Source of the DNA: Botryllus schlosseri
Lineage: Eukaryota
Length of the DNA: 64,000 bases
NCBI GenBank assembly: GCA_051294905.1
Contig: CM119378.1
Span: forward strand, 6,572,001 to 6,636,000
Reading direction: 5' to 3'
Shown: piece by piece, positions 12,455 to 44,806 of the stretch
Layout of the letters: every line of letters begins with the position of its first letter
How positions within the stretch are numbered: the stretch's first letter is position 1
Position numbers and translations under genes: made by a program
The notes under the pieces: model-generated
The model's input: only the letters and a program-made list of their open reading frames with translations
The model's database searches: none
What the model was told of the DNA's origin: nothing

Positions 12455-12536
12455 ATGAACAGTATGCAAACTGGATTTGATGCAAGAACAATTATTATTT
12501 TCACCCTCGGGATCTATGCAATCGTTCACAGCCAAG
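12455..12536 (+). CDS. CDON/BOC: CDON/BOC first coding exon, putative signal peptide MNSMQTGFDARTIIIFTLGIYAIVHSQ
   Basis: Acceptor tttacag at 12356, ATG at 12455, hydrophobic stretch, phase-1 donor G|gtaaag that matches the next exon. Confidence 0.75.
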
Positions 12537-15500: not shown

Positions 15501-18500
15501 GTTCTATTCTCTTTGATTTGCATAACAAACAGCTATATGATGGGTTAGTTGCATCTCACTGTGTTATCTATGACACAATGGCTTGCAAGTAATAAGTTCA
15601 ACTACCCCTGCCAAGCACGACCGTGTCCGAACAATATGTAAATAGATCACTTTATTAATTCCGTCGTTCCCATATCACGAACGCCCAGGCGAAACCGCCG
15701 TAAATTACATTTTCACTGGGTCACCTTATTCAGGCTATTGATTTTGTTGAAGTAGCCAAGAGTGAGTGTTTCTTCAACGCTTTGGGTCAAGTTTGCAGAC
15801 CTAGAGGGTTCGGGGTGTGTTATTTGACTTGTTTTAGGGGGAGGGGGTTATCGCTTTGCTGTTTGGCTTTTTTAGGGAAAATTATTCCCGTATTGCGTAA
15901 TTTTTTTGCTGTGCACCGGGAAAAAATATAATTTTTAGCAGTCTCGCCAAAATGTCCGTGAAATGTCACAGTTACAAATTTGACTGCTCTGCAGGAACTA
16001 GGTTACACAACGTAATCTTTTAAGTATCTCATACCCCACTAATTCAACAAAAATTGTAAATGCAACTTTTTACTGCAACTTTTGTTAAGATTAGGTGCAA
16101 CTTTCTCGCGGTTTTAGTGCAACAAAAACTTGCCCCAGTTATGGCACATCAACTGATGCTGGTCATGGCACATCAACTGATGCTGGTCATGCTGCTATAA
16201 TATTTTGTACACGTAATAATGTGACTTTGTGCGCATTTTCTCCCAAATGATGGATGATAAACTTGACATGTCGGAATCGTGAAATGTTGGATCTTATCAT
16301 CAATAATTCGCTTTTGACTCTTCCTGAATCATCCATATATGCTGTCGTTGGAATTTGATTCGCAGTGTTGGGGAAGATCCCATACGTACCAGACCAGCGA
16401 TTACATGTGATCACCACATAAGGCACAATGTAGCAGGTCATTCCAAGCGATCACTCGTCAATTCGTTCAATTTATCACGGTTTTCAAGTGGATTGGATTG
16501 ATTGCTCATGGCTGATGCCCGCGAGGTCTTGGGTAGATTAGAGAGCTTGGGAGAATTGTCCCGACATGGTTGATTTGGTATTTTATAGGGTTCAGCGTTG
16601 GGAATACGTAAAAGCCTTCCTGCAAGGTATAAAATGTCAATGTAAATTGAAATCTGCCAAGGTCAATCCCGGAAGTTCTCACAGTCACAGAAACGACTTT
16701 CAGGCCTATAAATGACGACGTTTATTACCGTACATATTTTATCCGGTCTGTATAAACCATGTTTGATTTGGAATCAATCAACTAATGCATCTTCGTAATT
16801 GAACAAGAGAAGTAATATACCAAGTATGTCCTCAAAATGATATTATGTCGACATGTTTTGCGGATGTAGTCAAATTAGTCTAGTCCGCTTGTATCTCAAT
16901 CGTCATCCCAGAAAAGTTTTTACTACATTGGTGCCGACGCGTGCCGTTAACTCTCTGCCAGTAGACCTCAGAAATTTGCCTGACCATCTATTTAAAAAAC
17001 GTTACCGGAAATATATTTTTCATATGTATTGATTAGGTGCCGGTATTGCAGTTGCTGTTATCTTGTGTTGTTATGTACCATTGTACCAATATGTGTAAAC
17101 TGCACTCTATAGACTCAGTCCTGCATTGCAGTCCCAAATCTTCGTTGTATGTTGCTTGTTACTGTATCCTGGTTGAATTTTTTCCCTACATTTCTTGTAG
17201 TGTTGTTTCATTATTTTCATTGTAATGCGCCTTTTATTGTAATGTGTGTACTCCTACAGGTGGCGTAGTACCCCTATACTAAGGCCCTAAATTAATGTGT
17301 CTATCTATATCTAAAAGCATATCCACTTGACTTTGGTACGCAGTCCAAGTTGGCAAACCCTAGTTAAGTACCAGTACTCCTATATAGTAGACGTACGATA
17401 CTTTGTTACTGGCCAGTGGCCACTTCTGATGATGTTCACCATCGTCCGCTGACTTCGGACCTTGTATCGGCACATCCGTTTCGTTTAAACTCCGTTCTTC
17501 TTTTCAGATGCGGAGTTTAGATTCGTCGTCGAACCCACGTCCACCATCGCAAGCCTCGGAGACAGAGTCGTTCTAAACTGCGACACGAACGTACCGGCTT
17601 CATCCGTAGAGTGGTACTTTGATGGCGCGAGTTTATCACCAGAACCAGGCATAACTCGTATGTAGTTTGATAAATAGCAGGTGATTTCACTTACGCCTTG
17701 TTACAGCGGGACAAATCAACTTGAATCATCAAAGACGGAAACGGTACAAGGACGACAGAAGTCGCCCCCGTGCGGATAACTCGCGGGAGGTAGGCCGTCG
17801 CGGGTCTACCCGTAAGAAAGTGAGACGCAGAAAAGGTAAGTAAACCTATACACTATGCAGCTTACACGCCGGGCGCTAGCTAACCCGGCGTTCAACTTCA
17901 GGCGGTTCTGGTAAGAAGAAGAAATCCGAAAGTCGTGAAGGACACCGATACGTGAGAAGCGTCGACGCGAAAACGCACATCGACGCGCAATCGTAAGTGA
18001 AAAGCCAGAAGTTGGCAAACCAGTCTCCTCTCCCAATTTTCAATGCGATATACTTGATTGTTAATATCGCACGTGGTCAATAACAAAGTATTTCGGAATT
18101 ACCACAAGAACCGCGTGAAATGGACCTGGTCAGACTTGTAAAAACTACTAGATTTTCAAAAGCTCAACTAGATCTAGAACTACTCAATTTTTAAAACTAG
18201 CAACTTGAACAAGAACTACTCACCTTTCAAAATACGCAGCAAGAACTAGAACTACTAAAAAAACGTTAGTTAGTTGACCGTCAACTAACTAAATGGATAT
18301 CTTGTACAAGTCTGGCCCTGGTGTCACGGTAGCTGAGCATTGAGCAAGGATCATATATTTTTAGATTATACCTACTCGCAGTGCCGGCTACCATTAGTCA
18401 TTTGGTGTTGGTCGCGAATAGTCATCTTGCAATTTCGAAAGCAACCATTTCCGATTACGCGCTGAAATTATGGGTACCCTCGACCAAATCTACTTTTTAA

Positions 18501-21500
18501 ACTACCTACTTGAGTACTTTACATACTTTTCATTTCCGCTTCCACTTGAATTGGTTTCCACACATCTTGGATATTTCTACTACTTCTTGTAATAGCGCTG
18601 ATATTTACGACTTTACTTTTGATTTTCTACTTCGGTAGCGACACTGTTCACTGTCGCTGTCTAGATATGTACGAATCTTGGGAAGCATTATTTTCAATAC
18701 TCAACTCATACATCATCTATTGCTTTCAGTTTGGGAGTGCGAATACTAGAAGACCGTTTGGAAATCGAGCGCCTTGCACCTAAAAACGCCGGTACTTACC
18801 ACTGCGTCGTGTCAATACCGAAAGGGTCAATACGCAGCTCAAATGCTCTCGTAGAAATTGCTCGTAAGTTACCCAATCTTTCCCCCATTCTTGCCATGTC
18901 GCGAAGTATCATTACCGCCTTATTTCACCAGACCTATCAAACTTCACATCCGATAAACCGGAGATAATCAAGACCGGACCAAGAGCCGCTGTACTCCCTT
19001 GTCGTATACAGGATGGGAGTGTGCCGCCCCCTATCATCAACTGGAAGATTGATGGTAATCTGTTGAAGAGCATCGAAAATGGTGAGTATATATATTATAT
19101 AGATACAATTAAATAGTGTATTCATATTGAAATGAATATACTATTCAATCGTATACTGAAGCTCTGTACCTCCAAGAAGCTTTTCAAATATATAGCTTGC
19201 AAGATAACCTGGTGTTTGAATATGTGCGCAACCGGTTAACACGTTTGATACAGTAATGGTCAAATGTAATATATAGCTCATATAATTCCTATGCATATTA
19301 CATACCTTTAACGAAGGTGACGCTTTTGTGGGGTTAGTTATGTCTTTTCTAAGAAGTAATTTACGGTATTATTCATGTTGGCGGTGTCTTGCATCGCTGC
19401 GGTCCAATATTTGAATTAGGAACAGTTGAGAGTATAGGGTTAATTTTGTAAATGCAATCCAGAGTCATAAGTGCGCCGCTGAACGTAAACCTACTGCCCA
19501 CTTATGCTCTCGGAAATTGTTGGGAATCCGTTTTTCACTGTATTATACTGTACACTGAAAATATGGTGACATTTGGATAGAAATAGTGATAAAGATTAAA
19601 TGGATAGAAATAATGAGACGATCCCGGATAATCTGTATTCACACCGGAGTGATCTTTCATGTTTGTTGAGGAATACACACTGCAGGGCGAGCGTGATCGA
19701 CTGGTAATTCCAGCAAATTTTCGATTTGCGATTATGACATCGTCGACGGATATAGTCTACTCTCATCCCGCAGTGTTTTGATTATTGGTATTCCACAATC
19801 GCAGTATATTCATCAGAGGACTGTCCTTTTAGAAAGATTAATACAAAATCGCCACAGACTACGATGGTTATCATTTATCAACATCGTGTTTAAGAATAGT
19901 TCCTTAAACAATGTACATGTGATGGCGATAATAAGAGGTCAAGAAAAGGCGATGGTAACTTAATAAATGACTGTCGCGAGTAATAGGGGATTACGTAATG
20001 CAGTACCAGCGTTATAATCATTCATAATCCTAACAATGTGTTTGTTACGAAGCAATGCGCGCGCTGAAATCTGTCAATTGGGTAAATTATGAATCAAAAT
20101 CGTCTCTGTCATCAATCCTGCACATTGTTACCGCACGAAGTTATGAGTACTTAACGCGCGGAAATAAATACAGTATATCATTTTCATTACGGAGTAAGAC
20201 GCAGTTTTCTAGAGGGGCCACTATTTATTATCAACCTGGTGGATTCACGCCCTGATTGTCAGTGTTATCAGGTCATATATCATCAAATAGTCAAAAGTTT
20301 TACATCTACATCTTCAAGGTGCGCAGATTCCATTATAGCTGAGTATCTCCTCTATGAAGCATACGCCAGCGTCATGTAGGGATATAATCTCTATACCTTA
20401 TCATAGTATCTCATTATTGTATTATTATATTAGACCAGCGGTTCTCAACATCTTTCTTCTATGATTTTGTTGCGTATCGTATTGCGTTAACGAAAAATTC
20501 AACTTTACTCGAAATACATAGGATTATTAACATGAGCTGATTAGCAAATAATTCGAACCGGAAATATCGGAACAAATGCGGCCCACGAGCTAATCCGCCC
20601 ATGATTATTAAGAATACACACACCAGCAAGGCAATATTGATGTGATGGTTGCAATCTTTTCTTCTCCACAAGCTGATCTAGGCGAATGATGATTGGTTTA
20701 AGTATTTAACTATGCATTCGATGAATACTTCTTGCATTCGAAAAAATTACGTTAACCATTTTGTGGAAGCTGTTATTTTTCTTATAAAAATGCATTTACT
20801 GCGTACCATCTGAAAAGACTCCAGCATACCGCAGGTTGAGAACCATCTTATTAAACTGCTGTCATTTTTGTTGACGAGATACAGGTTTTGAGTTATTCCT
20901 GCTTCAGACAGTGTACCGTGTCATTAATTCGAAACGGAAAGACTAAATATACATTATACAGCTATACACACTCTATTGTGTGATATAATTTCTCTACCCG
21001 TGTTGTTCGCGATAATTAACGATCGCGAAAGGCCGTTTCGATACCCGCCGCCAGTGCGCAATAAAAAGCTTTGATATCGACACCGATTGTAGCAATTTGC
21101 GGTCGCCTCGCTAAGTTGTTCCCATCACAAAACGCGTAACTACGCGCCGCACGGGTGTTATTTTATTGCGGGCGCACAATCAAACTATAGTCGAGCTATG
21201 TTGGCACGGTGCTAACTAACAGTTAAACCCGTTTCTGTCGTGCAATTACGCGTCGCCTCGTGTCTTCCAACGTGCGAATCTAGGCGCGTTAAATCGGCGC
21301 ACGAAACGGTTAAATCTATGGTTTCCGACCGCGTCTCCGTTTGCAGGTATCATTGACACGGAATTGTTTCTATTATGCGATTGAGAAATTGAAGGTCACT
21401 GAGTGTCGGCGGGATAGATCGTGTTGCTATTTTTTGCACATTATCACGCCCAGTACATAAGTTTGGTGAGGATGATATTTGTCATGTAGCTTATGCGGTT

Positions 21501-24500
21501 TTGATTAGTCGCGCTGAGGAAAATTATCCATTCGCAACAGAGTTGACGCATTGGTAAGTAGCCACTTTTGAGGCTTAAACGGGAAATACCGAATCGCATC
21601 CAAATCCGGTAATACCTCGAAAATCAAACGTATATGTTACTTGCAGGGACAGATTTCCAGATATGTGTTTCGCAAACATTGCAGATAGTTTGCATTTAAA
21701 GCAAACATCTTAAATGCATGGCCCTTTTTAAAACATGTTTTTTTATTGTTTTTGTTACCAATAAGTCACGAATCTGTAATTTTGACGTAATGGTGGATTG
21801 ACATCGACAATAAAAAATGTAAGTATAGCTCCTTTGACGAAAAAGGCCAAGACTACATCGTTATCAAGCATAATTACGGTCGGCGGTCATCATCACCAGA
21901 ACATCCATCCCGTACCATTGGTATATATCTATGCCGAACCGACGCCGAATTCGAAGGTTCCAACCATTCCATATCGTAAACTTCGAATGTATCTGTTGCA
22001 AATCGTCCGTAGGCTCATACGACATGTGTATTCAAAAGTATTCGCACAATTATGGCATAATTATTATACAACTTTTGAAAAATGAATTTATTTTTATAAA
22101 AGGGCATTTTTTAAAACGCTGGTAAACACATATTTGAAACAGAGTGTTTTAGAACACCATTTGTTTTAAGTGGAACCCTAGTGTACATTGTACAGTGTAC
22201 ACACGCCACATTCACATCAGGGCTACTTAACTGGTGGACCTTTTTAGTGTTAAACGCAAACCCATTATTGCTAGATTACGCACAAAAACCTAGTAGCAAA
22301 GAAGGTCGTGCTCTACCTTGGCAGTACAGGATTAGATTGAATAATACCGGATTGGTGTGCATTACCTTAGCAGTTGAGCCGCCATATAGTGTAACATTGA
22401 AAGCAATCCTTGATCCTGATTATCACTGCACGCTGCGTAAGCGTTAAGCTGTTATTTGTCATTCGTCAGGGTCTACTGATTAATCATTATCTTGTGGAAA
22501 CCTCCTTCAACGGCCGGCCATTTTCATGTTAGCAATGTAGATGCTCGCATCTAAATTGGAGTATATATTACAGACAAGACAACGTGATATTTTCTCGTAC
22601 AATGATCGCTTGCCTCCGTATTTCGTAGCGTAAGCCAGCCTGTATTGTTTTGACTGTAAGCCCGGAGTGGAAGTCGTTAAAATTCGACGAACGGTTCATC
22701 TTCGTGACTAATAACTATCCCAGCAATTTAATGCTCTCGCGCGCTATAATGCCGGTCTACATTCGGTTTGGATTTCCTTTTGGCGGAGGTAAACGTCGTT
22801 CTCGAGAACCCGATCAACCCGAAATGGAAATATTAGCACTCAAAATGTATCTCACGTTACCCGCATCCTGCCCGTAACCCAACCGAACCTGTTCAAGATT
22901 TCGATTGGTTTCAGCTTCGCGGTTATATCCTGGGACGTATCCCACGCAATCAAGTTTAGGCATACTTGCTAGTTGCGCGTGCACCGAACAATGAACATCG
23001 AACAAATAGAAGCACAATCAACAACCTGCCTTTGTGATCATTGAAGCGTCGCCTCATTAGCCAATCAACAACCGTAATTTCGTGCTTGCTAGTCTTCTAG
23101 CCATTCTATGGTCGGTGGTCCGCCCGCTCTTAGGCAGCTACTTTCAATCGCTTTGCGCGAAATCTTAACGACTTTCCTGTGAGTCTCATTCATGATCTTT
23201 ATCAATAATATATAGAATGAGACATTACAGCACAGTATTTATGAGATTTCCTGATTTCTGACCACCCTATGTCCAGTTATACCCGCCCGTCTGGTGCTGC
23301 AGATGAATTCATATTTCCTCTTATCTCTGTAACTCTGGCTGTCAAAGTTTCGATTTCAATTCTGTCAAGCGAAATTCATATATTCACTATGCTGGTTGCT
23401 GGTTGAATCGAGAGCTAGCCCAATAGGACACTAGCGAAAACATTGAACGAGAAACCTCTCTTAACCGGAATGCAATCTGGCACAACAAAAAATCAATCAC
23501 AAATGACATGCTACTGTTATTATGCTGGGTCAAATCTCGCGAAATCTAATACCTGTAACGATGCACCTTTTATGTATGTATGTACGTACGATACCGCTGT
23601 GTTGATACTTGAGTTTGTCTGGCTAGAAATTGGTGCAATATCAATCAACCCCGCTCGGATTTTAGTGAGTTTCATGACACCAATCGACAGATGTAAAGTA
23701 ATACAGCGATAATCGTTCGGAAATCGCAATTAGGTAACCCGATTCGTTGAGGAGAATCGCGTGAAATTCGATTCTAGTACGAGCAGGCTCGGTGTCATTG
23801 TCCTCAAACCGTTTAGGTGACAATTGTAGTGTTTCCCCAAAATTACAGGTGCCAGCGCTTCGCCTAATTGAACGCGTGTGAATATATAATGCCCATTCGC
23901 ACTTGCGTACAGACGTGTACACTTGTTGAGATATTTCGAAGAATTTACATGATTGCATGAGAATCCTGCACAGATATCTGGATGAGGAATGATTATAGCA
24001 ATATCCCATTATTTAACCTAGCTATTGCGTGTTGTTCTATTCAGAGTTTTGAGAAAAGGCGTTGCACAGTAGGTTTGGACTCGAGCGGTTACTGACCCGT
24101 TCGGAATCCCCTCGACCTTGAGTACTTGGCGCCGTGACATTTTGAGAGCCGTGATACCAAATTCTTGATAGCGACGCACCGGGTCGAATTGTAAACAGCA
24201 GGTGTTCGATTTGGTGCGCTTCCAGCGGAATCTGTCATCGTTTATGCACGTAGGGTCTTTGTATTGGCACTTGCTGCAATTTACATGCTCCAGTCGGTAT
24301 CTTAGCATTCGATCTAAAGTCGAATTATATCAAATAATACAACGGCTGTTTCGGGTTATGAGCGGCCGCAATATCGTTGTAGTGAGAGAGCGTGCAGCAA
24401 CTTTTGCATCTACTCTGTCGGCCTATATTGGTCTATCTCTATATCTATGTCAAATTGAATTGACCATTGTACATTAGGGCTGTTCAAAAAAAAATTTGCC

Positions 24501-27500
24501 TGAATCTTGCCGGTTACGTGATTAAATCGTTAGGTTGCCTTAAAAAACGACGCACACCAAATTTTAATTCATTCCAACCAATAATCGCTGATTTCGTACA
24601 GTTTGAAAATTTTGAATTTACCCAAAGATGCAAAAAAAATTTTTTGTCAGATTTTTCTGTCAACCCCATGAAATTGTTGCGCTGTCTTCAAAGACGATGC
24701 AAAACAAATTTGACTCAATTCCAACCAGTAGAAGCGGAGCTATTTGAGTTTTACTTCGATAATTCGGGGATTATCCTAGATTGGTGGATAATCCAAGAAT
24801 TATCACCGAAAAACTCAAATAACTCCGCTTTTGCTGGTTGGAATTGAGCCAAATTTGTTTTGCATCGTCTTTGAAGACAGTGCAACAATTTCATGGGGTT
24901 GACAGAAAAATTTGACAAAAAAATTTTTTTGCATCTTTGGGTAAATTCAAAATTTTCAAACTGTACGAAAGCAGCGATTATTGGTTGGAATGAATTAAAA
25001 TTTGGTGTGCGTCGTTTTTTAAGGCAACCTAACGATTTAATCGCGTAACCATCAAGATTCAGGGAAAAAAGCTATTTTTGAACAGCCCTATTGTACATGC
25101 TGGTGTTTTTCACAAATCGTTAATTTACATACAATGCAAAAGACTATACTGATGTTGAAACAAATGTTCAGTCGGAATCGATTATGGAATCGTTTCCTAT
25201 ATATCCTTGGTAAGTCCCGTGTACGACAGTGACCCAACTAAATGAACTGATATATAGGCTACTTAGACCCGGATATGAAGTTAATTGCTGGTAACATTCG
25301 ACAAGAAAAAGGCGGTGGTATCACTATGGGATGTATTGAAAATTACATTTAATATCCACCCGTCCGTAACCTATCAGATCTGATGTATCCTGTTTGCACA
25401 CCAACTGTTCGCTTGCGCAGGTGCGCCGCGGATACGCGCGTGACTCCAGGACCTTGTATGCAGTCAGATGTGGGTGACCACCGCGGAACACCTTACAAAT
25501 AAATAGTATAAATATACAACCGCAGCATTTGCTTTGAAAAAACTACTGTATCCCTTGTCAGCACTAGAAGGTCGCTTGCCTGATTATCAAAAGACGCGCG
25601 TTATCCGGCGCGACAAGCAAATATCACGCCACCCCGAATAATCTGTCAATGCATTCCCGTATATATCTTGATACCAGTGTATGTTACATGGTGTAATCTG
25701 TAAAGAATACCGTCGATTGAATCCGAGTAATGCGATGTAATCTGACAGTAGTCTCTCGGTGACAAGTCCGCGCGTATGGCACGACACCGGTAAACCTCGT
25801 ATCACCGAACGATTTGCACAGTTGTTGATGGATTAACGCAACTGAATACGTGATATCTTCTGAGTTAGTGTATTCGACCGCGCGCCCCGCTGTTGAGAAG
25901 CCTGGTCAGACTGGAAACAGGAATATTGTCTCTGTAAAGGGGACTGCTATGTTAATATATATATATTACTAACCTTCGGAACCGGAATGTCCCTTTCTCA
26001 GATGATTCCAATGTGACGTCACAACATAAATAACGCACCGGGACCGGTAGTACCGGTAGATAAATAAAGAAAATAAGTGGAATCAAACGAAATCATTGTA
26101 GCCATGAAATGAACATCATTCGTCTTTGTTAATAACACGCTGGCGGGCGTTTTTGATGTTACAGATGTTCGTTTCTTTGAATTGCATTCATTTCCATGAA
26201 GGCATCGGCGGTTGATATTGAAAAGTTTGTTTTGATTCGGGAAGTTGGCCGTAGCGAAATTCCTGTCGCGCATGAGCGAAGCTATTTGCAATGAAAACAG
26301 GAAAGGAAGAATTACAAATTTCGTTTGACAGGTGCATGAAGCATCTGGATTTCGAAATAATGAGCAAATGATGAGCCAATACTAATTGATTTGATTTTGA
26401 AGGCTCTGCCACTAATATCATCCCCTTTATATGGATCGTAATTCGTGATATTCCCATGTTGAACGGTTATGGTACATACTATCATGCTTGGCAGTACTTG
26501 GTACCCGGTAACAAACGTTATGTTTTTCCTATTCATTAAATCCTGTAATGTGGTATTTATATTTTGTCACCAGCGGTTATTTTGATATTGGGTGGTGGAT
26601 CGGTCGACTTGTTATTAAAAATTTCACTCTGTATTCGTCTTTCATTATGTTTTACAAAATACCTCACCCGCGAAATCCCGATACAATGCTCGGGTTGCTC
26701 GGGAAATTGACGACGCGACTATGTAAATATGAAAAATTTCGATCGCAAATATGTGTCCAAGCACGCAATCCGTTTTCCGTAACGAAAAGGCTCAGTAGTA
26801 ATGCGATCGACTGTCACATTGTCGAAGATGCCTCCGTGTCGTAAATCAACAACATGAGCATGAGCCATTTGTCAGCTTGCTGCCAGAGACGAGAGCATTT
26901 TCGAATGATTCCGTCTTATACCTCGAGCCAGACTTGGATAACCAAGATAATTCGTAGTATAGTGCCGGTAAGCTAATGTGCGAAATGTTTCTATGCCCTA
27001 ACTTAAATTATTATCAATTTTCTGGTTCTCCTGTAAATGCTGCAGGAGAAATATATAATACGAAACAAGCCAAGCTTGCTGTAAAGACATCTGCCACTAT
27101 CTTGCTTATGAGAATAATCTCTAATATGACACGAACTGAACTCGAATGAATTTCAAAGTTTTCGCGAATTCAGTAATTCTAATTCTAATCTAATCTGAAA
27201 AAACTGTAGGAGCGTATAGCTGTAATTCTAATTGTGGTCTAATTTGAAAAAAAAACTGTGCAGCTATGATTCGAATTCTAATCAGATTTATAGCTGAAAA
27301 TCTTCTGGTTGTACAATTCAGCCTCGAGCAGAAATTTGCAGTGTCTCTCTCGCTCAACAAGTAATTTAAGATGCTGAAAACGCGTTCAGTTAAGTTCAAC
27401 CTTCCGCATAGCTGTGAAATGTATTGATACTCAACGCATGTTTCATATGTTCCACAGAAACAGCGTTATCCGCATTCACGTATCTTATGTATTTTTGCAA

Positions 27501-29596: not shown

Positions 29597-32500
29597 GCTT
29601 CAATACATGTAAAACGTGTTTATTCAAGTTTGTAATTGGTCTGGTCTTGGTCTTTCATTTTAGCTCCAGATGGTGTCAGTGTTATTATACCATAATATCC
29701 TGCAACACTCTGAAATTCAAAAGGCTTTTACCACAATTTCATGTGTGACGCCCATGATTTATGTCGGAGTCGGAGGACAAGTTACTTTTTCGCTGTAGCG
29801 GTAATTCGGTAATCGCTATGATGTCATCATTCAGGGGTTTCCAGGTTTTGTAACGCAGTTCGTTTTGCGTTTTGACATATCCTGGACACTGGACAGTAGG
29901 GCTGTTCAAAAATAACTAGTTTTTCTGGATTCCAGCGATTCAGTCATTAAATTGTCAGGTTACCCTAAAAAACGCTGCACACCAAATTTGGTTCAATTCT
30001 AACAAGTCTAGGTCTCCGCAGATCCAGTTAAAATTTTTAATTTAAACAAGAAAATTAAAAAAAAAAAATTCAAATTTTTCTGTCAACCCCATGAAATTGT
30101 TGAGCTGTCTTCTGAGACAATGCAAAACAAATTTGACTCAATTCCAACTAGCAGAAGCGGAGTTATTGGAGTTTTTGGTTGATAATTGTTGGATTATCCT
30201 AGATTGATCCAAGACAGCTCAACAATTTCACGGGGTTGACAAAAAAATTTGAATTTTTTTTTTAATTTCCCGGTTTAAACTGCAAATTTTAATTGGATCT
30301 GCGGAGCCCTAGACTTGTTAGAATTGAACCAAATTTGGTGTGCAGCGTTTTTTAGGGTAACCTGACAATTTAATGACTGAATGGCTGGAATCCAAAAAAA
30401 AAGTTATCTTTGAACAGCCCTACTGGACAGTGGACATATTGATAATTGTCAAAATCATTTTGTCATCGTGCCTTCTTCAGGAGCCATTGCCAGGGCCTCC
30501 ACTGCCAAAGCAGTCTGCCCAGCCATGTATCTAAGACTAACACGGGCGCTGATTTTGGTGAACTTGATACAAAGAATGGGTTGCTGATAGTTCAGATTCC
30601 GCTTTGCGTTGGAATTTCGATCATTCGTCGCCTCGTTACGAAATCAAGCCTTTTTTTGGGGTTGATTTGTTATTATAGCGAGGATCGATCTTATCGCGTC
30701 GGATGATTGAAAGGAATTCAAGTTTTAAACGAAGATTCTCAGAATTTCAAAAACAAGGCTATCCTCGCAACAGATTGCTCTTTTTTGCCCACCTCCAACA
30801 ACCTGTCGAAATGAGCTTCGCTGAATTTTATTATTGAGTTTGGGTATGCATTAATAGCCGGACCATGACTAGGTGCACAAGCGTAGTCACAGTAATAACA
30901 TGCAGTGTCTCTTTAAGTACATGGCTTATCTTGTTACGGCGAAATAACCGGAGATTCTATACGCGAATATCCGGATTTGTCATCACATTATCGATATCCA
31001 GGTATCAAATTTCTGAATTCTACACCGCAAACCGGATCGCATTTGTTATCTGGGGCGTTCTGGACGACAAGGACAATGGATTCATAGTATCCCGATTGGT
31101 GAAGTAGTGAACATTATTATAATTGGCGAAACAATTATCTCTACACGCAGTGCAGTATCAGAAATATATCCCATTCCTGATTTGCTCGGAGATAGTCAGC
31201 TGATGCTGCGTAAATTGCTGCGGTATTTACGTCATAATCGCAATAATTCTCAAGTGACGACGCTCCTAAATAGCAGCCTCGGTAAAAGATATACCATCTA
31301 ATATTCTAGAAACGTAACGAGTGTCTGAATTACGCCTTCATTTTTATAATCCTGGTTTGCGGCTTCAATGCACGTAGAATGTAGATGTACATTTGAACCC
31401 AGATGTGCCTAAATTGCGACAGGAAGTAGGTCGGTATCGCAGTACCGGTACTCAAGTTATCGGGTTGAATAACACGGAATTTCATTTTCGACAACGGCCT
31501 CCTCAAAAACCTCTACCAATTCATGCGAATTACCTAAACCGTTAACCCATATCATTACCGCAGCGGATCTTGTTTCGGATTTATCGCAAACAGCTGTGAT
31601 GGGTTGTAAACTATTTTTAGTTCTAGGTTTGAAAACGCGTACATTGTCGACTGAATGTTAAGGCCTGAATAAACTCAAACCGCATAATTTGGACGAAATT
31701 CAAACGTAGACTTCATGATATAGTAGGGTTATTTTTTGGTGACATAATCAGTTCGGAGTAGCAAATCGGCATTGGGGTGATGAAAGGTTACGTCTCTTCG
31801 ATTCCAGGCTCCTGCATCATTAGCAGTTAACTGGGCCTGGCACAGAGTGGCCTATATTTTGCCACCAGTGAAATTTCGGCACCGACATTAGTACACAGTC
31901 GCCACCTGTAGAAGTGCCCGCCGTGTGGTAAATAAATAAATAATAAAATAAATAAATAAGTGGTTGCACTAAATAAATTATGCGTTAGAAATAATTTAGT
32001 TTGGAGACAGTAAGAAAACAGCCTGGCTGTTATGGGTTATTTTACCTTATGAGTTTCCCATCCCTCGAGAAAGCACTATCGATAATTCCCAGGCAGTTTT
32101 TGTGTAATATTGCAATTACCTTAACGCCCGGCCGATTCCAAACAACATTCGACCTCGGGTGCGATGTTTACGGTTAATTAAGTTTTATTTGCTGAGTGGG
32201 GTCGCGATCCCGACGGCCAAAGGTCACAGGCATTTTCGCCCCATCGCGGCGAGCAAATGGGGCGCCCTTCGAGGATCATAACCAATCAGATTAGCGATCA
32301 TGCGTGACGCGGTATGACAGTGACAATTTCGCGCATTTGGAGTTTTTTTTTCGAAAAGCTGTTTTAACTTGTCGCCTAAAAATCAGTCAGTGATTATTAT
32401 ATTTGCAGTACAGAGCAGGGGTTCTTAAAGTGGGCGCGGACTAGTTAATAGTTATGCGTGACATTATGGATATAATTGGAAAAACATTACACACAAACCT

Positions 32501-35500
32501 AACAACAAATTGAGTGGAGCACGTGGGGGCCCACGCTAAATAAAGTTTAGGAGCCCCTACTGTAGAACAATGTGCTATGTTTCTACATAACGTACTTTTC
32601 CGCGCACACTGGCCTGTGCAGTTTCTGTCAAATTCCTCACGCATGACAGTTCTTTAACGACGCAACGCTTCGATTTCAGACCAATACGCGATACTACCAT
32701 CTGGAAGCCTTCTAGTTAAGAACGCATCGGCGTCGGCTGCGAGCACATTCCGATGCCAGGCGCAAAATCGAATCACTTTACAAACAATAGAAGCGCCGTA
32801 TCCATCGACATTGCAAGTTGAAGGTAACTGTCGCTACCTGCCTTTTGAGTGTTGCGCCGAGATTGGAATTACGCTCAAATTGCGTCTGGTGTATGAAAAT
32901 CGAATCGCGCAACATCTGCATTTTATCAGATCGACTGGAAAAGGCGGGCATAATCTATCCGCACTCGAACGAAACAATAAACGTGACGGCTAGGGTGGGG
33001 GAGAGATTGCTAATGGCGTGCGTATCTGATGATCTATCCAAGACGGTTTGGACTCGCGATAACGGAGACGTCCCATTCTCGGCCGCAATAACACAAGGTC
33101 AGTAACCCGCTCGAGGAGAGGATTGTCTCTCACTTACTAAGTCAACAACCCGCCGCGTACCTAACATAATCGAAGCGGGAATCAATGCGTGTCAAATTGC
33201 AACCGTTTTCAATAGGGCGTTAATGGCGAGCCGGATTGTATCGCGTTAAATGGATTGGTATGATTGATTGTTGTATTCGTGGTGTTTTTCGACTGCAATG
33301 GTCATTTACACCAGGCCGATATTCCATATTCTAATTCCGTAGCTGCCGACTTGTAGCACGGCCCACTTCCAGACACCGGTTACGCGGATCAGATCGCGAG
33401 GAGGAGCCTGGATAAACCTAATGCTAGCTCTCACGACTTTGCTATCCTATATGTTTTACCATCGATAATGACGGTTGATGTGTTATGCTAAGGCATAATA
33501 AGGCGTGTAAATGCTGCACTTGACTTTACGACCCATTATTTGGTTACTAGAATAACAAATTTTCTCAATTTCCGGTAATGAGAATCGTGTGTTGTAAAAT
33601 GCTATACGTTCGCTGGTTCGCATAACCTAATCACCTCCCATCACGACTAGCATGTAACTTAACTAACGGATCTGCCCTTGTCTAGTTTAACGACCGGTAA
33701 TAGCGAGGGAAGCCTGTAAAACATTTTGGCCATAATAATTGGTTGCGGTGTTACGTCACCAAGGGGCTTCATTCAATGATGACTGCTTCCTTCGCGGAAT
33801 TTATGAGGCAGAGAAATTTAAAGCCCTTGGTTTGGTCACACGCCAGTTCTATAGTAGTTACTTTTCTGTCAATATGGGAACCACTGACCATCCTTACTAG
33901 TACAGAGACCAATATAACAATTTTCTTCACGATAATTTTCAGCTGGACTCAATTTGAACACCACTGAAGATGATAGTGGAGTCTACAAATGCAAAACGAG
34001 TGAAAATTCGGCACAAGTGCAATACAACTTGACAATATCAGGTAATGGGGATTTCAAATAGGGTTACTATTGCTCCACTAATTGAATAATCGCAAAGATA
34101 CTCTTGTAGGTGCAGAGGTTCAATATACAGTTGAATAGAATATAAATTTTAAAATGAATTCGGATATTTTCGGCTGACACTCGTCAGGGGTAATCGTCAG
34201 CAACTAGAAAGAAGAATAGCTGATTTACAATGTTCTTTCCAATTCTCTACTATCAGCTGACGATTACCCCTGTTCCAGCCGAAAATATTTATTTATTCCA
34301 ATATGAATGTACTATTTAATATTCGCTACGAATGCCATTCCGAGACGCACGATAATCTATGAAAATAACACGCGTGACATTATTTTGTACAGGTCCGGCT
34401 CAGTGTCGCCCGACCACGGAGACATTCTTCAACTTGAACGCGATTAACGGAAATTCCATCACAATGGGATGCTCCTCGACGCAAATAGGATCCACCTGGC
34501 GGTGGTATCACAATGGCGAGAGAATATCGGATGGGGAAGGTTTGTAACGAATGCAACCGCCAATGCGTCGATGTGGTGTTTAATAAAATGGGTTTTTATG
34601 AACTCTCGATGCAGGATCGACGCTTCTGATATCTTCCCCGAAACTTGGGTTTTATCAATGCTTCTCTATATCTGATGGTGAAGAGTGTTCCGTTGTCTTT
34701 ACGGTAGATAATAGAGGTACGTATCGTAATTGCTGCATTGCAGTTCCTGTGTTGCGCTGTGCACCGTTTCATCAAGTTTTATAAACTGCGGGTTTAATAT
34801 TGAAACGGTTTACCCCGTATGTCAACGTAGATATGCGGTGTATCCGGGGAAGTAAATGGAGTTTTTCAACCTTTGACTAATGTCATGTCACAACGAAGCT
34901 GTGGATGACTGAATACTAGCCATATAGAGGGGTCAACGTAGTCAGCGTGTGTACTCAAGTAGAAGTAGAAGTGACGTCATCAAGTCTACTAAAGTAGAAG
35001 TAGCGACTATAAAGACATGTCAAAACTACTTCAAGTGAAACTAGAAAAGTATTCAAGCAGTTGCGAAACGTAGATTTGATCGAGGGTCGAATACTCGCTT
35101 ACTTTCAGGAGATAATCGGAGGTTTCTGCTTCCGAAATTGCGCAGCGCATTTTGCGACTAACGCAAAATGACGATTGACCAATGACACCACAAATAGGCG
35201 TAATTTTCGCAAAATATATTCAGTTACCATGATACGGGAACTATTTCGCCCAGATGTTATGACAATTTCACACGTAAACGCGATGCGAACATACCACAAA
35301 GCTACTTTATGCGTTTACAAGATTTGAAGTACAAGAATTTTTGTCTTAAAACTGTTGAGTAGATGTGGAACGCGTTCAAAAATGAGCAAGTAGTTTTTAA
35401 ATAGGGAAAACCTACTTGAGTCATGCGAAAAAGTGGAAATTCCTCTATACTGACCAACCCTGTTTAATACCGACTCCACCCCATCATTGTCTAAACCGCA

Positions 35501-38500: not shown

Positions 38501-41500
38501 TACCGGTAGCTATAATTCTAATTCTAGTCTGATTTGGAAAAACAATGTTTAGCTTTGATTATAATTCCAATCTAATTTGAAAACTGTGTCGCTATAATTC
38601 TAATTCTAGTCTAATTTGGAGAAACATTGTTCAGCTTTTATTCTAATTCTAATCTAATTTGAAAAAATGCGTTGCTATAATTCTAATTCTAGTCTAATTT
38701 GGAAAAACAATGTTTAGCTATGATTATAATTCTAATCTAATTTGAAAAAATGTGTCGCTATAATTCTAATTCTAGTCTAATTTGGAAAGTCATTGTTCAG
38801 CTTTTATTCTAATTCTAATCTAATTTGGAAAAAATGTGTACCTATAATTCTAATTCTAATCTAATTTGAAAAAAAAATGTTTAGCATTTATTGTAATTAT
38901 AATTTAATCCGGAAAAGCTGAAAATTTTCTAGTTATTCGAGTCTGCCCCGATACCCCTTCATTTAAAGTGGACAACGAAAGATTTGATATGTACTCAAAC
39001 AGAAACTTTTAAAAAGTCCATCCGATCTATTGATGGGTGCTTGAAGTGCATTCAATCCGGGCATCGCCCGACTGAAGCGTTTTTAACCAAGTGCGATTTC
39101 TTACTTCACCGTACTAATTCGCTGCCCGCTTTTGCGTTCCAGGGAAGTTTTACCGGTTTCGAATCATCGCGTTCAACAGCAAGGGCTACTCTAAGCCTTC
39201 GCATTCGTCCAAGTCCTTCCCGAGGAGGCAAAAATCTCTGAGCCACCGACCCGAGATACGCGCCGCGATCGCGGAACAGTGGGACACCATCAGAGTGGAA
39301 TGGGAGGTATGGCGAAATAACTTCCACATATCTTTACGCCTGGACAGGATCGAATTTATACGCAGCCCTACATTAGGGCTGTTCAAAAATAACTTTTTTT
39401 CTCGGATTATCCTTGATTAGTGGATAATCCGTGGATTATCAACGAAAAACTCCAATAACTCCGCTTCTACTGGTTGAAATTCACTCAAATTTGTTTTGCA
39501 TCGTCTTTGAAGACAGCTCAACAACTTTATGAGGTTGACAAAAAAATTTGAAATTTTTTTTTCAATTTTTCCTAATAAATTAAAATTTTTAAATACAATT
39601 GCGGGGTCTTATACTTGTTGGAATTGAACCAAATTTGGTGTGCAGCGTTTTTTAGGGTAACCTGACAATTTAATCAGTGAATGGCTGGAATCCGGGAAAA
39701 AAAAAGTTATTTTTGAACAGCCCTACCCTACATGTGCTTACTAACGAGCCCCTATTTTACCAATAGATCAGCCGAGATTTTCAAACTGCTGCCGACAACT
39801 CTGAAAATTTCAATATCAACCAATGCATCGGGGACTGTAACACAAAATTCCGTCCGATACATACGGAATTACGCAAGTGTGGCACAATAAAAACTCCTTC
39901 GTATCAATGCGCCCCGAGTCAGAAATTACTGAAATAACTTTTTTCCAGATTTTTGCGGCTATCAGCTAAAATTGTTAGCTTGGATAAGAAACTCCACATC
40001 GTAATTACGTTGTCTACAATAACGAGGCAAAACAAATTTGACTCAATTCCAACCCGTGGATCCGAAGTTATTTGAGATTTTCGTTTGTAATTCTGGGAAT
40101 ACCCGCTGCCGATGCTATTTTTGTCGAATTCAAAACTTTCAACTGCAATAATTTCGTTTCTAGCGGGTGGAATTCAGCCAAAATTGTTATGCATCGTTTT
40201 TTAGACAACCTAAACAATTTCATGGGGTAGTCAGTGAAATTTGAACATTTTTTTTTCAATATCTTATAATAAATTCAAAATTTTTGAACTCCTGCAGCTT
40301 CACAATCTACCGGTTGGAATTGCGTCAAATTTGGTGTGCAACTTTTTTTGCCTGCTCGACAATTTTAGCTAATAGCCGCAAAAGTCTGAAAATGAGTTAT
40401 TTTCGCACAAGCCTACCGCATGTTTAACGTGAGAGGTGTCTTTCAAAAGCCTAGAACGAGAGGGGGCCCGTTCTATAAGTCGGAAGCTTAGGAATCATGT
40501 TAAGAATATACCCTTAGTTATGATCTTAATAATCGGCCTGGTCAATTGACTATAGATGTCGAGACACCCGTGAATACCAAACAGCAACGACAACTAACGT
40601 ATCTTCAACTATTCTTCTGGAATGTAAAATACGAACTAACTGAAGAATATTCTGTTCAGTACGACATGGCCCCCGCGCATATCAACGGATATTACATCTA
40701 CTACCGGCCGACCGACTCCGACGACGAGGCAGATTACGTGAAAAAGATCTACGACTCCGTGCCGTCTTCTGTATACAAAATCAGAAACCTACAGCCCGGC
40801 ACGCAGTACGATGTCAAAATGCAGGCAAGGCGATACTCCTATTGTGCGCTGAAGTATTATCCAGATTCTACACGAAAAGAGCGTGTTTCTCACGTAAAGG
40901 GTGGCGCATAAAAACATAACCCAACTAAGAATTATATAGCTGTCATAATTCCTACGTGCATGCATAATTTGGATTAAAATGTAGCACTCGATTGTCGATT
41001 TATACCGCGGTATAAGTCTGAGGCAGATTCTGGTTTCTTGTGACACAGGTGTATATTCACACCCATATATCAGGGATTGTACACTGGTCGAAATACACAC
41101 CCTTTTCGCTGAGAATGTAGATATATTGCCGCGATTTTCTACTGAAGTACAGGTATAGGTAAGTATTTCCGAGCTATACGCCCGAACTAGTCCAATTATC
41201 AGTAGAAAATGAAGGGTACAGCTACTCAAGTAGAAATACTCAATGCAAGTACAAATTACTAGCTACTTCATGTAGGATTAGAATAGGAAAGATAGGTCGA
41301 CTAAAGTAGTTATTATGGCTATCTAAAGTACACAAAGTAAACATATCTACAAGTATATATACAAGTACGCTGATCTTGCTTGAGCATTGCTTAAGCCCTC
41401 TTTTCGCCTCGATTATTCGAAATTTCACGCCAGTGACGTCATATTTTGTGATACGACCGTTGACATACAATGTTCGTTTCAATTATCTACTAGCTTCTTG

Positions 41501-43251
41501 GGGGTACAGAACTTCAATATACAATTGAATAGTATATTTATATTGAAATGAACCCGAATATTTCCGGCTGACGCTCGTCAGGGGTAATCGTCATCAACTA
41601 GTCTTATCAACAATCGTATCACAAAATATGACGTCACCAGGATGAAATGTCGTATACGAGAGCGTTCAATGTACTATTTTTAGATGGTACACGAACTCTT
41701 TTTGTTGACACACCCTTGGCTGGTGTATTTTGATAAAAGTCGACTCCAAGGCACACAAATTAAAGTGTGAACGACCCCTTCCGACCTTCTCTACTAGTTG
41801 CTGACGATTACCCCTGGCGAGTGTCAGCCAAGAATATTCGGGTTCACTTCAATATGAATATATCATTCAACTGTATTATTACTTCGTTACTGATTCTAGA
41901 TATTCAATCCGTAACCGATGCGTCTTTTTATGCAGGCATACAATCGGCTGGGTCCATCTCCGTTCTCAAACGTGATCATAACTGAGGTTCCCAAAGGCCC
42001 GTCGCGTTCAGAAGAGGATGAAGACCAACAAGGTAATCCATTATATTCAGTTCTAATGCTTTACCACTGTACGAAAGGGCCAGTTAGTAAATTGATACAA
42101 CATCACAATATCAAGCCTTTAATGACGCGAGTAGGCACAAGATGATTGCTAGCAAACTGACACGCGACATTTGATGTTTCAGACGACTACAGGTCGGACG
42201 TGAACGACCCGGCCCGGGCTCAATCGCACAGACGCAGCATGATCTACCTCATAAGCGGCATTATCGTGGCCGCCATTTTGATGGTGCTTCTTTTCACCGT
42301 GTTCTGTTACTGGAAGAAGCGCGCCGCCAAACAGCGCGAGGCGACGCCGCCGTCCAAGGCGAATCACGGGAATTCAGCAGGGTGGGTTTTACTTCTGTAT
42401 TGGCTTCTAAACCTTACCGTTGAAGTGCTTGGCGTGCATCTGTGTAATACGGAGGTGGTCATTAACGAAGTACCTGTGTTCTAATACATTTGGACGGCTA
42501 TTGTGTAATACGGTTAATACTATGCAATTTCAGGTACAGCGCCGGGAAGCAATGTGACCACATCGGCATGTCCAAACTAAACCCAAGCGGGCACACGCCT
42601 TCACACAAAGCCTGCAGCGCCAACCACTCTCCATCAGACACGAAATGCCACTGTTCTCGCCACCATAGCAACCATTCCAGCCTAGGCCGAGACGCAACAA
42701 GCTACCACTCTTACCCTGTGTCTCCAGTTGGATTCGAATACGTTACACCCAACGGGGGTTATACGGGCATAAACGGAGCGCCAATGCACGTTATCATGGA
42801 CCCGAGACATTACGGGATAGGGAGATGGGTTCGCGGCGGCGAATTCTGCCATATTATCCCGGTCGACGCGCGTAAAATGAGCGCCGACGCGAGCCAGCGC
42901 GAGGTAACGCGCGTCAACGCGAGCGGGCAGATGGTGACGCGCGCGTTCGACGGCAACGTGACCACGGACGCTGTCAGACACGATCACGGTTATCATAGTA
43001 ACGATGATGGCGCGCGTACAGGGTCTGATTCGCAGCTCGAGAAATCGGAAGATGTCTCAAATCAAAGCGACACAGACGCTGGTACTTCGGGTATTACGAC
43101 TATAGTAGAGGCGCCTACGGACAGTAGCTCGCCCACGCCTGAGGAAGGCTTAATTAAAAACGCGGAATCTAAAACAGATGGGCCTTCAGACTGTGAAGGC
43201 AATGTCGAAGTGGAATCGACGCCTTTTTTAATATCGGACGACAAGAGCTGA
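12455..43251 (+). CDS. CDON/BOC: CDON/BOC (Ihog) family Hedgehog co-receptor: signal peptide, 4 Ig, 3 FN3, TM, cytoplasmic tail; 22 coding exons, 3369 nt, ~1122 aa
   Basis: Phase-consistent exon chain: 12455-12536, 17508-17657, 17707-17835, 17902-17992, 18730-18863, 18932-19081, 32680-32823, 32930-33097, 33943-34041, 34393-34539, 34615-34716, 35632-35696, 36177-36296, 36642-36828, 37520-37576, 37645-37760, 37828-37912, 39143-39306, 40660-40824, 41936-42032, 42183-42381, 42534-43251. Diagnostic family motifs: YAILPSGSLLV (Ig2), WSARGNGGSPI (FN3-2), GYYIYYRPTDSD...LQPGTQYDVKMQ...PFSNV (FN3-3), TM IYLISGIIVAAILMVLLFTVFCYW. The 4 Ig + 3 FN3 layout is BOC-like. Confidence 0.92.
15271..16137. mobile_element. 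hAT MITE, 867 bp
   Basis: TIR TAGGGCAAGTTTTTG / CAAAAACTTGCCCCA; perfect 8-bp TSD GTTATGGC (15263-15270, 16138-16145); TGCAAC-rich subterminal repeats. Confidence 0.85.
16140..16191. repeat. 24-bp tandem duplication adjoining the right TSD of the 15271-16137 MITE
   Basis: ATGGCACATCAACTGATGCTGGTC occurs twice. Confidence 0.85.
16912..17312 (+). mobile_element. Decayed LINE 3' end
   Basis: KSFYYIGADA-(frameshift)-NSLPVDLRNLPDHLFKKRYRKYIFHMY* parallels the LINE C-terminus at 46500-46635, followed by a T-rich UTR and a CTAT-like tail. Confidence 0.65.
17508..19081 (+). CDS. CDON/BOC: CDON/BOC exons 2-6: Ig1 (with polybasic insert) and first half of Ig2
   Basis: RVVLNC...VEWYFDG and LEIERL...AGTYHC Ig motifs; AVLPC...INWKIDG; canonical GT-AG junctions. 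Confidence 0.9.
18131..18314. mobile_element. Small hAT MITE with CTAGAACTAC-rich interior
   Basis: TIR CAGACTTGTA / TACAAGTCTG; flanks GACCTGGT / GCCCTGGT (7/8 TSD). Relatives at ~43480-43590 and ~50140-50415. Confidence 0.7.
20436..20848. mobile_element. Charlie-like hAT MITE
   Basis: CAGCGGTTCTCAAC ... GTTGAGAACCATCT; flanks TATTAGAC / TATTAAAC (7/8 TSD). Confidence 0.7.
24475..25090. mobile_element. Foldback hAT-type MITE, copy 2, 616 bp
   Basis: TIR TAGGGCTGTTCAAAAA; palindromic body; TSD TTGTACAT (24467-24474, 25091-25098). Confidence 0.92.
29567..29595. repeat. (GCCT)n microsatellite
   Basis: About 7 tandem GCCT/CTGC units. Confidence 0.9.
29897..30422. mobile_element. Foldback hAT-type MITE, copy 3, 526 bp
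   Basis: Same TIR; TSD CTGGACAG (29889-29896, 30423-30430); partial internal deletion of the right arm. Confidence 0.92.
31745..31960 (+). mobile_element. Possible SINE-like retroposon with (TAAA)n tail
   Basis: TTCGATTCC B-box-like motif near 31797 and an (AAAT)n tail at ~31929-31958; no clear A box or TSD. Confidence 0.3.
32680..34716 (+). CDS. CDON/BOC: CDON/BOC exons 7-11: second half of Ig2, Ig3, Ig4
   Basis: ILPSGSLLV..FRCQAQN; LLMAC..TVWTRD..DDSGVYKC; ITMGC..WRWYHNGE..GFYQC; all junctions are phase 1. Confidence 0.88.
34935..35105. repeat. AGTAGAAGTA-rich dispersed repeat; relatives at ~18470-18645, 28190-28345, 41200-41380, 56040-56175
   Basis: Shared CTCAAGTAGAAGTA and GTAGATTTG(A/G)TCGAGGGT motifs. 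Confidence 0.55.
35632..42032 (+). CDS. CDON/BOC: CDON/BOC exons 12-20: linker and three FN3 domains
   Basis: GLEPSSMYSVEMVAV; PSKPRV..VSLMWSARGNGGSPIKGY..GKFYRFRIIAFN; YYRPTDSD..LQPGTQYDVKMQAYN. Confidence 0.92.
35758..36158. mobile_element. MULE/Foldback-like MITE with inverted arrays of a ~15-bp repeat (CCGAGAATGGACATTA-like), copy 1
   Basis: Perfect 9-bp TSD ATTTCTTTT (35749-35757, 36159-36167); repeat arrays are in opposite orientation at the two ends. Confidence 0.88.
37205..37436. mobile_element. Truncated right arm of the foldback MITE family
   Basis: Shares CAAATTTGGTGTGCAGCGTT and ends TTTTTGAACAACCCTA. Confidence 0.7.
38211..38910. repeat. AT-rich minisatellite, ~16 subunits of ~40-47 bp alternating between two types
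   Basis: Repeated AATTCTAAT(T)CTA(G/A)TCTAATTTGGAAAAA; short version at ~27170-27290. Confidence 0.9.
39374..39725. mobile_element. Foldback hAT-type MITE, copy 4, left arm largely deleted, 352 bp
   Basis: Both TIRs intact; TSD CCCTACAT (39366-39373, 39726-39733). Confidence 0.9.
39925..40415. mobile_element. Diverged palindromic relative of the foldback MITE family
   Basis: Shares CAAATTTGACTCAATTCCAAC and AACAATTTCATGGGG modules; ends are roughly inverted. Confidence 0.6.
41430..41880. repeat. Most complete copy of an unclassified dispersed repeat (core CTAGTTGCTGACGATTACCCCTGACGAGTGTCAGCCGAAAATATTCGGGTTCATTTCAATATG)
   Basis: Other copies at ~2766-2835, 3710-3795, 7975-8110, 12826-12965, 19125-19185, 28741-28925 and 34110-34320. 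Confidence 0.8.
42183..43251 (+). CDS. CDON/BOC: CDON/BOC exons 21-22: transmembrane helix and ~240-aa cytoplasmic tail, stop TGA at 43251
   Basis: Hydrophobic segment followed by WKKR; phase-2 junction GG|gtgggt...ttcag|G; long ORF 42490-43251. Confidence 0.9.
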
Positions 43252-44322: not shown

Positions 44323-44699
44323 GGTTCTATACCAATACCGAGAAAACCATTACCGAGAATGGACATTACCGAGAATGGGCATTACCGAGAATGAAAATTA
44401 CCGAGAATGAACACCACCGAGAATGGACATTACCGAGAATGGCCAATGTCAAGGATATAGCTTACTGGGACTGATGTTGTCGAGAAATTTATACCTGAGC
44501 ATCGATACTGAATGTGGCAACGCCGTGATGCACACACACGACCTGTTCATATGCATAACATGCCTGCATTGCATATATTGCATTCTCGGTAATGTCCATT
44601 CTCGGTTGTGTCCATTCTCGGTAATGTTCATTCTCTGTGGTGTCCATTCTCTGTTGTGTACATTCTCGGTAATGGTTTTCTCGGTATTGACCGGACACC
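44323..44699. mobile_element. MULE/Foldback-like MITE, copy 2
   Basis: Same ends and internal spacer as copy 1; perfect 9-bp TSD ATATTTTTG (44314-44322, 44700-44708). Confidence 0.88.
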
Positions 44700-44806
44700 A
44701 TATTTTTGCAGGCTTTCGATGTTAATGCGTAAATCGCGGTTACTATACCAGTGGTGTAGCAGCATGTGCTATGACTTTAGTTGAAAATGCCCCCCCCCCC
44801 CTAAGT

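Follow-up and report, generated by a model that had tools for sequence, protein, structure and literature searches.

Two dedicated exons place a conserved polybasic insert within the first Ig domain of a BOC/CDON-type Hedgehog co-receptor in the tunicate Botryllus schlosseri

The BOC/CDON-type gene of Botryllus schlosseri, which encodes a candidate Hedgehog co-receptor, contains two small exons that introduce 74 residues, rich in lysine and arginine, into the first immunoglobulin (Ig) domain of the protein, Ig1. The gene lies in a 64,000-nucleotide stretch of the genome, called the window here (NCBI GenBank assembly GCA_051294905.1, contig CM119378.1, positions 6,572,001 to 6,636,000 of the forward strand), and all coordinates below are positions within it. 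Both small exons are genuine coding exons of the gene and are included in every complementary DNA (cDNA) contig sampled. Comparison with the ortholog from Styela clava indicates that the insert is ancient within the tunicate lineage and has been kept there by selection. Tentatively, we favor a role for it as a cationic arm that stays on the receptor.

The original prediction, made from the sequence, described the two exons with their GTAAGT donors, and both are found spliced into cDNA contigs from three studies (Logan contigs of runs X1, X2, and X15). These contigs can be treated as cDNA because introns are skipped in them at GT/GC..AG borders. The exon chain reads 17508-17648, 17707-17835, 17902-17992, 18730-18863, and 18932-19081, with similar depth throughout. 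Single contigs of 530 and 558 nucleotides span 17506-17645/8, 17704/7-17833/5, and 17900/2-17992 and finish with a 12-nucleotide overhang past 17992, TTTGGGAGTGCG, matching the first bases of the exon at 18730. Two allelic contigs of 114 nucleotides over 18730-18825 bring along 18 nucleotides of the preceding exon. Two of the three junctions named in advance, 17835/17902 and 17992/18730, are present in the contigs, and the joints 17835/17902 and 18863/18932 are GT..AG. In each of the three runs, word depth is at least as high over the insert exons as over their neighbors, and contigs extend at least 155 nucleotides upstream of 17506. A raw-read RNA run (X23, about 6% of the run read) gave almost no cover of the gene.

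The same contigs bear on whether the exons can be left out. None of those in the three cDNA runs skips either insert exon or joins exon Ig1a to 18739, behind the in-frame AG at 18737/18738. A direct joint from 17657 to 18739 had been proposed as the sign that the insert is bypassed, and no such joint occurs in these runs. The 129-nucleotide exon had also been described as skippable; its 1-1 phase agrees with that, and the skipping itself was seen in none of the runs. The 91-nucleotide exon is needed for the reading frame, as had been proposed, because the insert exons have phases 1-1 and 1-2 and exon Ig1b opens in phase 2. It is hard to see how the exons could be an artefact absent from mature mRNA, whether as chance open reading frames, a retained intron, or a misassembly, and this explanation is given next to no weight. 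Nothing was found to support it, and it is refuted by spliced contigs with GT/GC..AG joints at flanking-exon depth in three studies, by orthologous exons in Styela, and by the dependence of the Ig1b frame on the second insert exon.

One splice site differs from the original prediction, which placed the end of exon Ig1a at 17657/17658, before a GTATGT donor. In the contigs of all three runs, the first insert exon is reached by a joint from 17645 to 17704 with a 3-nucleotide ambiguity, since CAG fits both sides. The exon is taken to end at 17648 because 17648/17707 is the only canonical placement of the four and because 17649-17657 has no depth. The donor in use is thus a GC at 17649, and the GTATGT 9 nucleotides downstream (17658) is unused in the contigs. 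With the exon ending at 17648, the protein lacks the residues G-I-T, and Ala takes the place of Pro at the junction codon, with phase 1 kept. The Styela Ig1a exon stops at the equivalent place, 8-9 residues ahead of RRKR. A second GC donor, CAG/GCAAGG, is probably used at the end of the exon for the third fibronectin type III (FN3) domain (40825), as judged by homology only.

The insert peptide has 26 lysine and arginine residues (the predicted count), 8 aspartate and glutamate residues, and 9 hydrophobic residues, with 43 residues contributed by the first exon and 31 by the second. The first exon (17707-17835) encodes a QRRKRYKDDRS block and the first half of a polybasic center; the second encodes a KKKK run, RYVRSVD, and THIDA and sets the frame of exon Ig1b. 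There are three basic runs, RRKR, RRRK, and KKKK. RRKR and the one further R-X-X-R motif, RYVR, flank a 49-residue core, again as predicted. The 301-nucleotide stretch of DNA that holds the insert occurs once in the 495.5-Mb genome, and an origin from a repeat or transposon is rejected on this ground.

The two exons interrupt Ig1 where the original prediction had placed them, between the half that bears the tryptophan and the half that bears the F-strand cysteine, according to alignments and to an AlphaFold2 model of the Styela domain. In Pfam searches, exon Ig1a matches the first half of Ig_3 (E 3.6e-6) or I-set, and exon Ig1b matches the second half of Ig_2 or I-set, with the pattern L.I..L....G.Y.C. 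Each of the four Ig domains of the gene is split over two exons.

The assignment to the BOC/CDON group, already proposed in the original prediction, holds in tblastn colinearity and in matches to the third FN3 domain, FN3-3. As assembled from open reading frames, Pfam, and tblastn, the gene spans 17508 to 43248, and its product has four Ig and three FN3 domains, one transmembrane segment, and about 240 residues of cytoplasmic tail. The FN3-3 exon was searched against 1.84 billion representative proteins, with giant multi-FN3 proteins set aside. Its best single-domain matches, at 45-55% identity, are CDON of Discoglossus and Latimeria, BOC of Protopterus, a CDON-like protein of Saccoglossus, a BOC-like protein of Branchiostoma belcheri, and the "brother of CDO-like" protein of Styela clava. 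The motif Y[YH]R.TDSD...DY, an acidic YYRPTDSD..DY stretch, is common to all of these orthologs. In vertebrates, the acidic stretch of the membrane-proximal FN3 domain belongs to the domain that binds Hedgehog and Ca2+. A scan for an ATG followed by a hydrophobic core and a phase-1 AG/GT donor gave one candidate for the first coding exon, at 12464-12536, which resembles the Styela signal peptide in alignment. Architecture, FN3-3 signature, and orthology agree in placing the gene in the CDON/BOC/Ihog family (PMC10317163), with the signal-peptide exon as a putative part of that architecture.

A search of the genome with the Styela protein returned this gene (about 52% identity) and a short unplaced haplotig, and nothing else. 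With this gene as the best match, at that identity, the idea that the Styela protein is a paralog from the same species is rejected. The unplaced contig (C118:1-3566) duplicates the FN3-3, transmembrane, and tail exons, and its tail is 53% identical to that of Styela, like the copy in the window. It is probably an uncollapsed haplotype and not a paralog. Judged by these matches, the gene is the single BOC/CDON ortholog of the genome.

The Styela clava "brother of CDO-like" protein (XP_039254752, a predicted RefSeq protein of 1245 residues) is colinear with the B. schlosseri protein over the four Ig domains, three FN3 domains, transmembrane segment, and tail. It carries an insert of 101 residues at the same place in Ig1, past strand C' and ahead of strand D. 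The block QRRKRxK[DE]DRS is matched at 9 of 11 positions between the two inserts, and RYVRSVD is identical at all seven, followed by ..T.IDA. In both species a polybasic center is followed by acidic residues (28 lysines and arginines among the 101 residues in Styela), and the 1245-residue Styela protein has no R-X-[KR]-R motif other than RRKR. The spacer between the two motifs is 49 residues in B. schlosseri and 77 in Styela, which has an extra serine-rich stretch. Over the first 240 residues, the longest stretches of exact identity are QRRKR and RYVRSVD, both inside the insert, while the remainder of that region is about 28-37% identical. Over the rest of the protein, identity is about 30-45%, and the insert with RRKR and RYVR/SV is retained despite it, an outcome that the original prediction had sought from such an alignment. 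The Styela tail is unlike vertebrate tails, yet it is 45% identical to the B. schlosseri tail over 232 residues.

Exon structure is conserved as well. The Styela exons are Ig1a (147 nucleotides, phase 1-1), two insert exons (183 nucleotides, 1-1, and 118 nucleotides, 1-2), and Ig1b, which starts in phase 2; the lengths in B. schlosseri are 141, 129, 91, and 134 nucleotides with identical phases. The Ig1a donor is GT in Styela rather than GC. Variation within B. schlosseri was also compared. A second allele of exons Ig1b and Ig2a is present in all three cDNA runs (18769-18795 and 19004-19047) and makes six amino acid changes (E>D, P>H, T>N; R>H, D>G, K>N), and in the same runs the 220 nucleotides of the insert exons show one difference from the reference, synonymous, at 17735. 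The smaller number of amino acid-changing alleles in the insert than in Ig1b and Ig2a points the same way as the conservation, in a small sample.

Outside the tunicates the insert is missing from the orthologs compared. The vertebrate CDON/BOC, amphioxus, and Saccoglossus proteins have the same type I architecture of Ig and FN3 domains and the same FN3-3 motif, and the Ig1 insert is absent from all five orthologs examined (frog, coelacanth, lungfish, acorn worm, and amphioxus); the frog, coelacanth, and lungfish proteins agree with the original prediction, in which vertebrate CDON/BOC are not known to carry such an insert. Because it is conserved in Styela and absent from the vertebrate, amphioxus, and hemichordate orthologs, the insert reads as a tunicate-lineage trait and not as random low-complexity sequence. 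On this comparison, the two exons and three introns arose in the tunicate lineage, before B. schlosseri and Styela diverged. Searches with the full-length Styela protein, the Ig1-plus-insert fragment, or the cytoplasmic tail gave no further tunicate orthologs, and a motif scan of all retrieved proteins found the insert motifs in Styela only.

At the BOC-like locus of Branchiostoma belcheri (2868-3161), the whole of Ig1 is on one exon and Ig2 is split. An origin of the new exons within an ancestral intron inside Ig1 was considered, and amphioxus, with Ig1 on one exon, gives it no support. A literature search combining CDON, BOC, or Ihog with heparin or furin, or with ascidians or Ciona, returned nothing describing the insert. 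The insert is not unique to the B. schlosseri genome, being contained without comment in the RefSeq model XP_039254752.

AlphaFold2 was run on residues 20-215 of the Styela protein with a thin alignment of 10 rows. The model has a confident Ig fold, with a predicted local distance difference test (pLDDT) score above 90 over residues 1-50 and above 85 starting at residue 141. Ahead of the insert are strands B, C, and C', and behind it come a short T-I-D strand and then strands D to G. About 90 residues of the insert region have a pLDDT of about 50-70 and are mostly without regular structure, apart from a weakly supported helix that covers the QRRKR block at a pLDDT of about 67-70. The RYVR site lies about 5-8 residues ahead of the first confidently modeled strand. 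A HMMER alignment to Robo Ig domains likewise has IDA.. adjoining the normal C'/D region. The insert is thus predicted to be a long flexible loop across the C'-D connection, outside the core of the fold. The insert lies between the B-strand and F-strand cysteines, and therefore the canonical B-F disulfide spans it. By domain order, RRKR and RYVR are convertase-type motifs placed in the ectodomain in both species, and convertase P-domains (PF01483, above cut-off) are found at four or more loci of the B. schlosseri genome.

The tentatively favored explanation is that the loop would be a retained cationic arm binding sulfated glycosaminoglycans, with RRKR as a probable single convertase cut. The surface-exposed arm would stay on the receptor and bind sulfated glycosaminoglycans such as heparan sulfate on glypicans, coupling the co-receptor to the proteoglycan side of Hedgehog reception. 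RRKR, which is invariant, is likely to be a furin-type site. One cut there would make Ig1 a two-chain domain joined by its fold and its disulfide; the polybasic center would remain on the C-terminal chain, and processing would tune the arm, not remove it. A retained arm is favored because the basic center is kept in both lineages, which a discarded spacer would not require. It is favored also because Hedgehog reception depends on heparan-sulfate proteoglycans contacting Ihog, and glypican-Ihog contacts matter in Hedgehog transport (PMC10317163), and because basic patches on the N-terminal Ig domains of Ig-superfamily receptors, including Ig1 of LAR-RPTP, bind heparan sulfate (PMC5645493). Several points weigh against it. 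The end blocks are near-invariant, which is more specific than charge-driven glycosaminoglycan binding needs and may instead reflect a protein partner or double cleavage. The conservation comparison covers only two species. The weak helix over RRKR in the Styela model could limit access by a protease, and lysine at P2' (RRKR↓YK, RRKR↓NK) is not ideal for furin. Regular expressions for the strict Cardin-Weintraub motif (XBBXBX or XBBBXXBX, histidine counted as basic) gave no match in either species; that consensus is not required for heparan sulfate binding, so its absence weighs little.

The double cleavage just mentioned, the first of the two outcomes in the original prediction, is unlikely on present evidence. 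Convertases would cut after RRKR and at RYVR↓S in the secretory pathway and free the 49-residue core like a connecting peptide. The mature Ig1 would be two chains stapled by the B-F disulfide, with a new N terminus, SVD..., leading into the short strand before D. This would fit the invariance of both motifs and their flanks between two distant species, the predicted accessibility of RYVR close to the first confident strand, the presence of convertases in the genome, and a variable distance between the sites, 49 against 77 residues, as a spacer should have. Serine and valine after RYVR are a favorable P1'-P2' pair. Set against these, RYVR is a minimal R-X-X-R site whose P2 residue is not basic, and a polybasic center kept in both lineages has no explanation if the core is discarded. 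In a protein-docking loop, the end blocks would form a specific site for a partner (such as Hedgehog, Patched, another co-receptor, or, in cis or trans, domains of the receptor itself) and the basic residues would be secondary. Their conservation is sequence specific and goes beyond composition, and the Styela model has a helical tendency in the first block and the T-I-D strand in the second. We nevertheless consider docking a distinctly improbable role: the loop is modeled with low confidence, no partner is known, and regions that bind glycosaminoglycans or serve as convertase substrates typically have this kind of composition. Slightly more doubtful again is a tolerated passenger, a weakly constrained low-complexity loop with its ends kept for the Ig fold or for splicing signals, neither cleaved nor bound to a ligand. 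A middle that aligns poorly, a length difference of 27 residues, and the predicted disorder would all be expected of such a loop. The retention of the same exon phases while Ig1 diverged to about 30% identity argues otherwise, as do the basic center kept in both lineages and the lack of amino acid polymorphism in the insert next to several changes in the flanking Ig exons.

Other features of the window lie in the introns and beyond the gene, and the coordinates of the exons, motifs, and dispersed repeats are collected in Table 1. Three intronic intervals (18143-18325, 18448-18508, and 19103-19136) have contig depths of hundreds to thousands in every run, the raw RNA reads included, along with numerous loose ends and rearranged joints; they are expressed high-copy repeats outside the mRNA of the gene. 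A dispersed repeat with the open reading frame-like motif ..FSVNP.KLL.CL.RRCKTNLTQFQPVEAEL.EF.. is found inside introns on both strands, with no Pfam match. Tandem repeats at 35741-36049(+), 44278-44471(+), and 44452-44776(-) encode ..ITENGHYREWT.PRM.. in several frames and are probably a satellite or minisatellite. A neighboring gene at about 49690-57900 on the minus strand has Pkinase exons (E 2e-19) followed by RCC1 repeats (E 4e-16) and in sequence resembles a NEK8/NEK9-type kinase.

Table 1. Coordinates of the BOC/CDON-type gene parts and of the dispersed repeat in the 64,000-nucleotide window.
Feature	Position	Strand	Remarks
Putative first coding exon (signal peptide, Met...HSQ)	12464..12536	+	Ends AG/GT, phase 1; position putative
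Exon Ig1a	17508..17648	+	141 nt, phase 1-1; Ig1 strands A to C', B-strand Cys, C-strand Trp; cDNA 17506-17648
GC-AG intron	17649..17706	+	58 nt; donor CAG/GCATAA, shown by cDNA
Insert exon 1	17707..17835	+	129 nt, phase 1-1; acceptor ...gttacag, donor GTAAGT; cDNA contigs, 3 runs
RRKR codons	17733..17744	+	Sole R-X-[KR]-R motif of the insert
Insert exon 2	17902..17992	+	91 nt, phase 1-2; acceptor ...caacttcag, donor GTAAGT; cDNA joints
RYVR codons	17946..17957	+	Minimal R-X-X-R motif, then SVD
Exon Ig1b	18730..18863	+	134 nt, phase 2 start; Ig1 strands D to G, F-strand Cys (GTYHC)
Exon Ig2a	18932..19081	+	Loose end ACCAATACGC... past 19081, matched at 32680
Exon Ig2b	32680..32822 (end approximate)	+	Loose-end match; tblastn with Styela protein
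FN3-3 exon with GYYIYYRPTDSDDEADY	40660..40824	+	CDON/BOC signature stretch
Transmembrane and cytoplasmic exons	42161..43248 (bounds approximate)	+	Tail 45% identical to Styela over 232 residues
Dispersed RRCKTNLTQFQPVEAEL repeat copies	3012-3215(+), 24464-24844(+), 30046-30204(+), 39420-39608(-), 40071-40274(-), 54799-54942(-)	both	

The BOC/CDON/Ihog proteins and the heparan-sulfate proteoglycans are both central to Hedgehog reception, and the link differs between flies, where it is heparin dependent and uses an FN3 domain, and vertebrates. The tunicate insert would be a third lineage-specific solution, either tying the co-receptor to glycosaminoglycans or gating it by proteolysis. If excision were to prove true, a free and strongly cationic peptide, 49-77 residues long, would be shed at cells receiving Hedgehog, and a maturation step like that of a connecting peptide would take place inside an Ig domain of a morphogen co-receptor. 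The gene also illustrates cleanly how a domain that occupies a single exon in amphioxus can be split by two new coding exons and three introns.

Known systems offer partial parallels for the proposed arm and its processing. NCAM carries a heparin-binding stretch in its Ig2 domain. The lysine patch in Ig1 of LAR-RPTP is likewise a cluster of Lys and Arg on the N-terminal Ig domain of an Ig-superfamily receptor and provides an analogy for how a retained arm could work (PMC5645493). The LAR-RPTP and NCAM patches comprise 4-17 residues within a normal fold, whereas the tunicate insert is a predicted disordered loop of 74-101 residues with its own exons and convertase-type motifs. The insulin receptor, Met, and Notch (at S1) are furin-processed two-chain receptors. 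The cut proposed here differs in that it would fall inside one Ig domain, whose own disulfide would bridge it. Drosophila Ihog binds heparin and heparan sulfate through FN3-1, not through an Ig loop (PMC10317163). Dispatched, a Hedgehog-pathway protein, is another furin-processed case (PMC8630017). In such proteins an R-X-K/R-R motif lies in an exposed ectodomain loop and the two chains stay associated after the cut, as would be expected of the tunicate insert under the single-cut proposal. The mini-exons MeA-MeD of LAR-RPTP are also dedicated small exons that add residues to Ig loops, changing ligand binding (PMC5645493). They insert few residues and are alternatively spliced, whereas the B. 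schlosseri exons add 43 and 31 residues and are present in every contig sampled. What sets the insert apart from heparan sulfate-binding Ig patches and from two-chain receptors is how large it is, that exons of its own encode it, and that it sits within one Ig domain.

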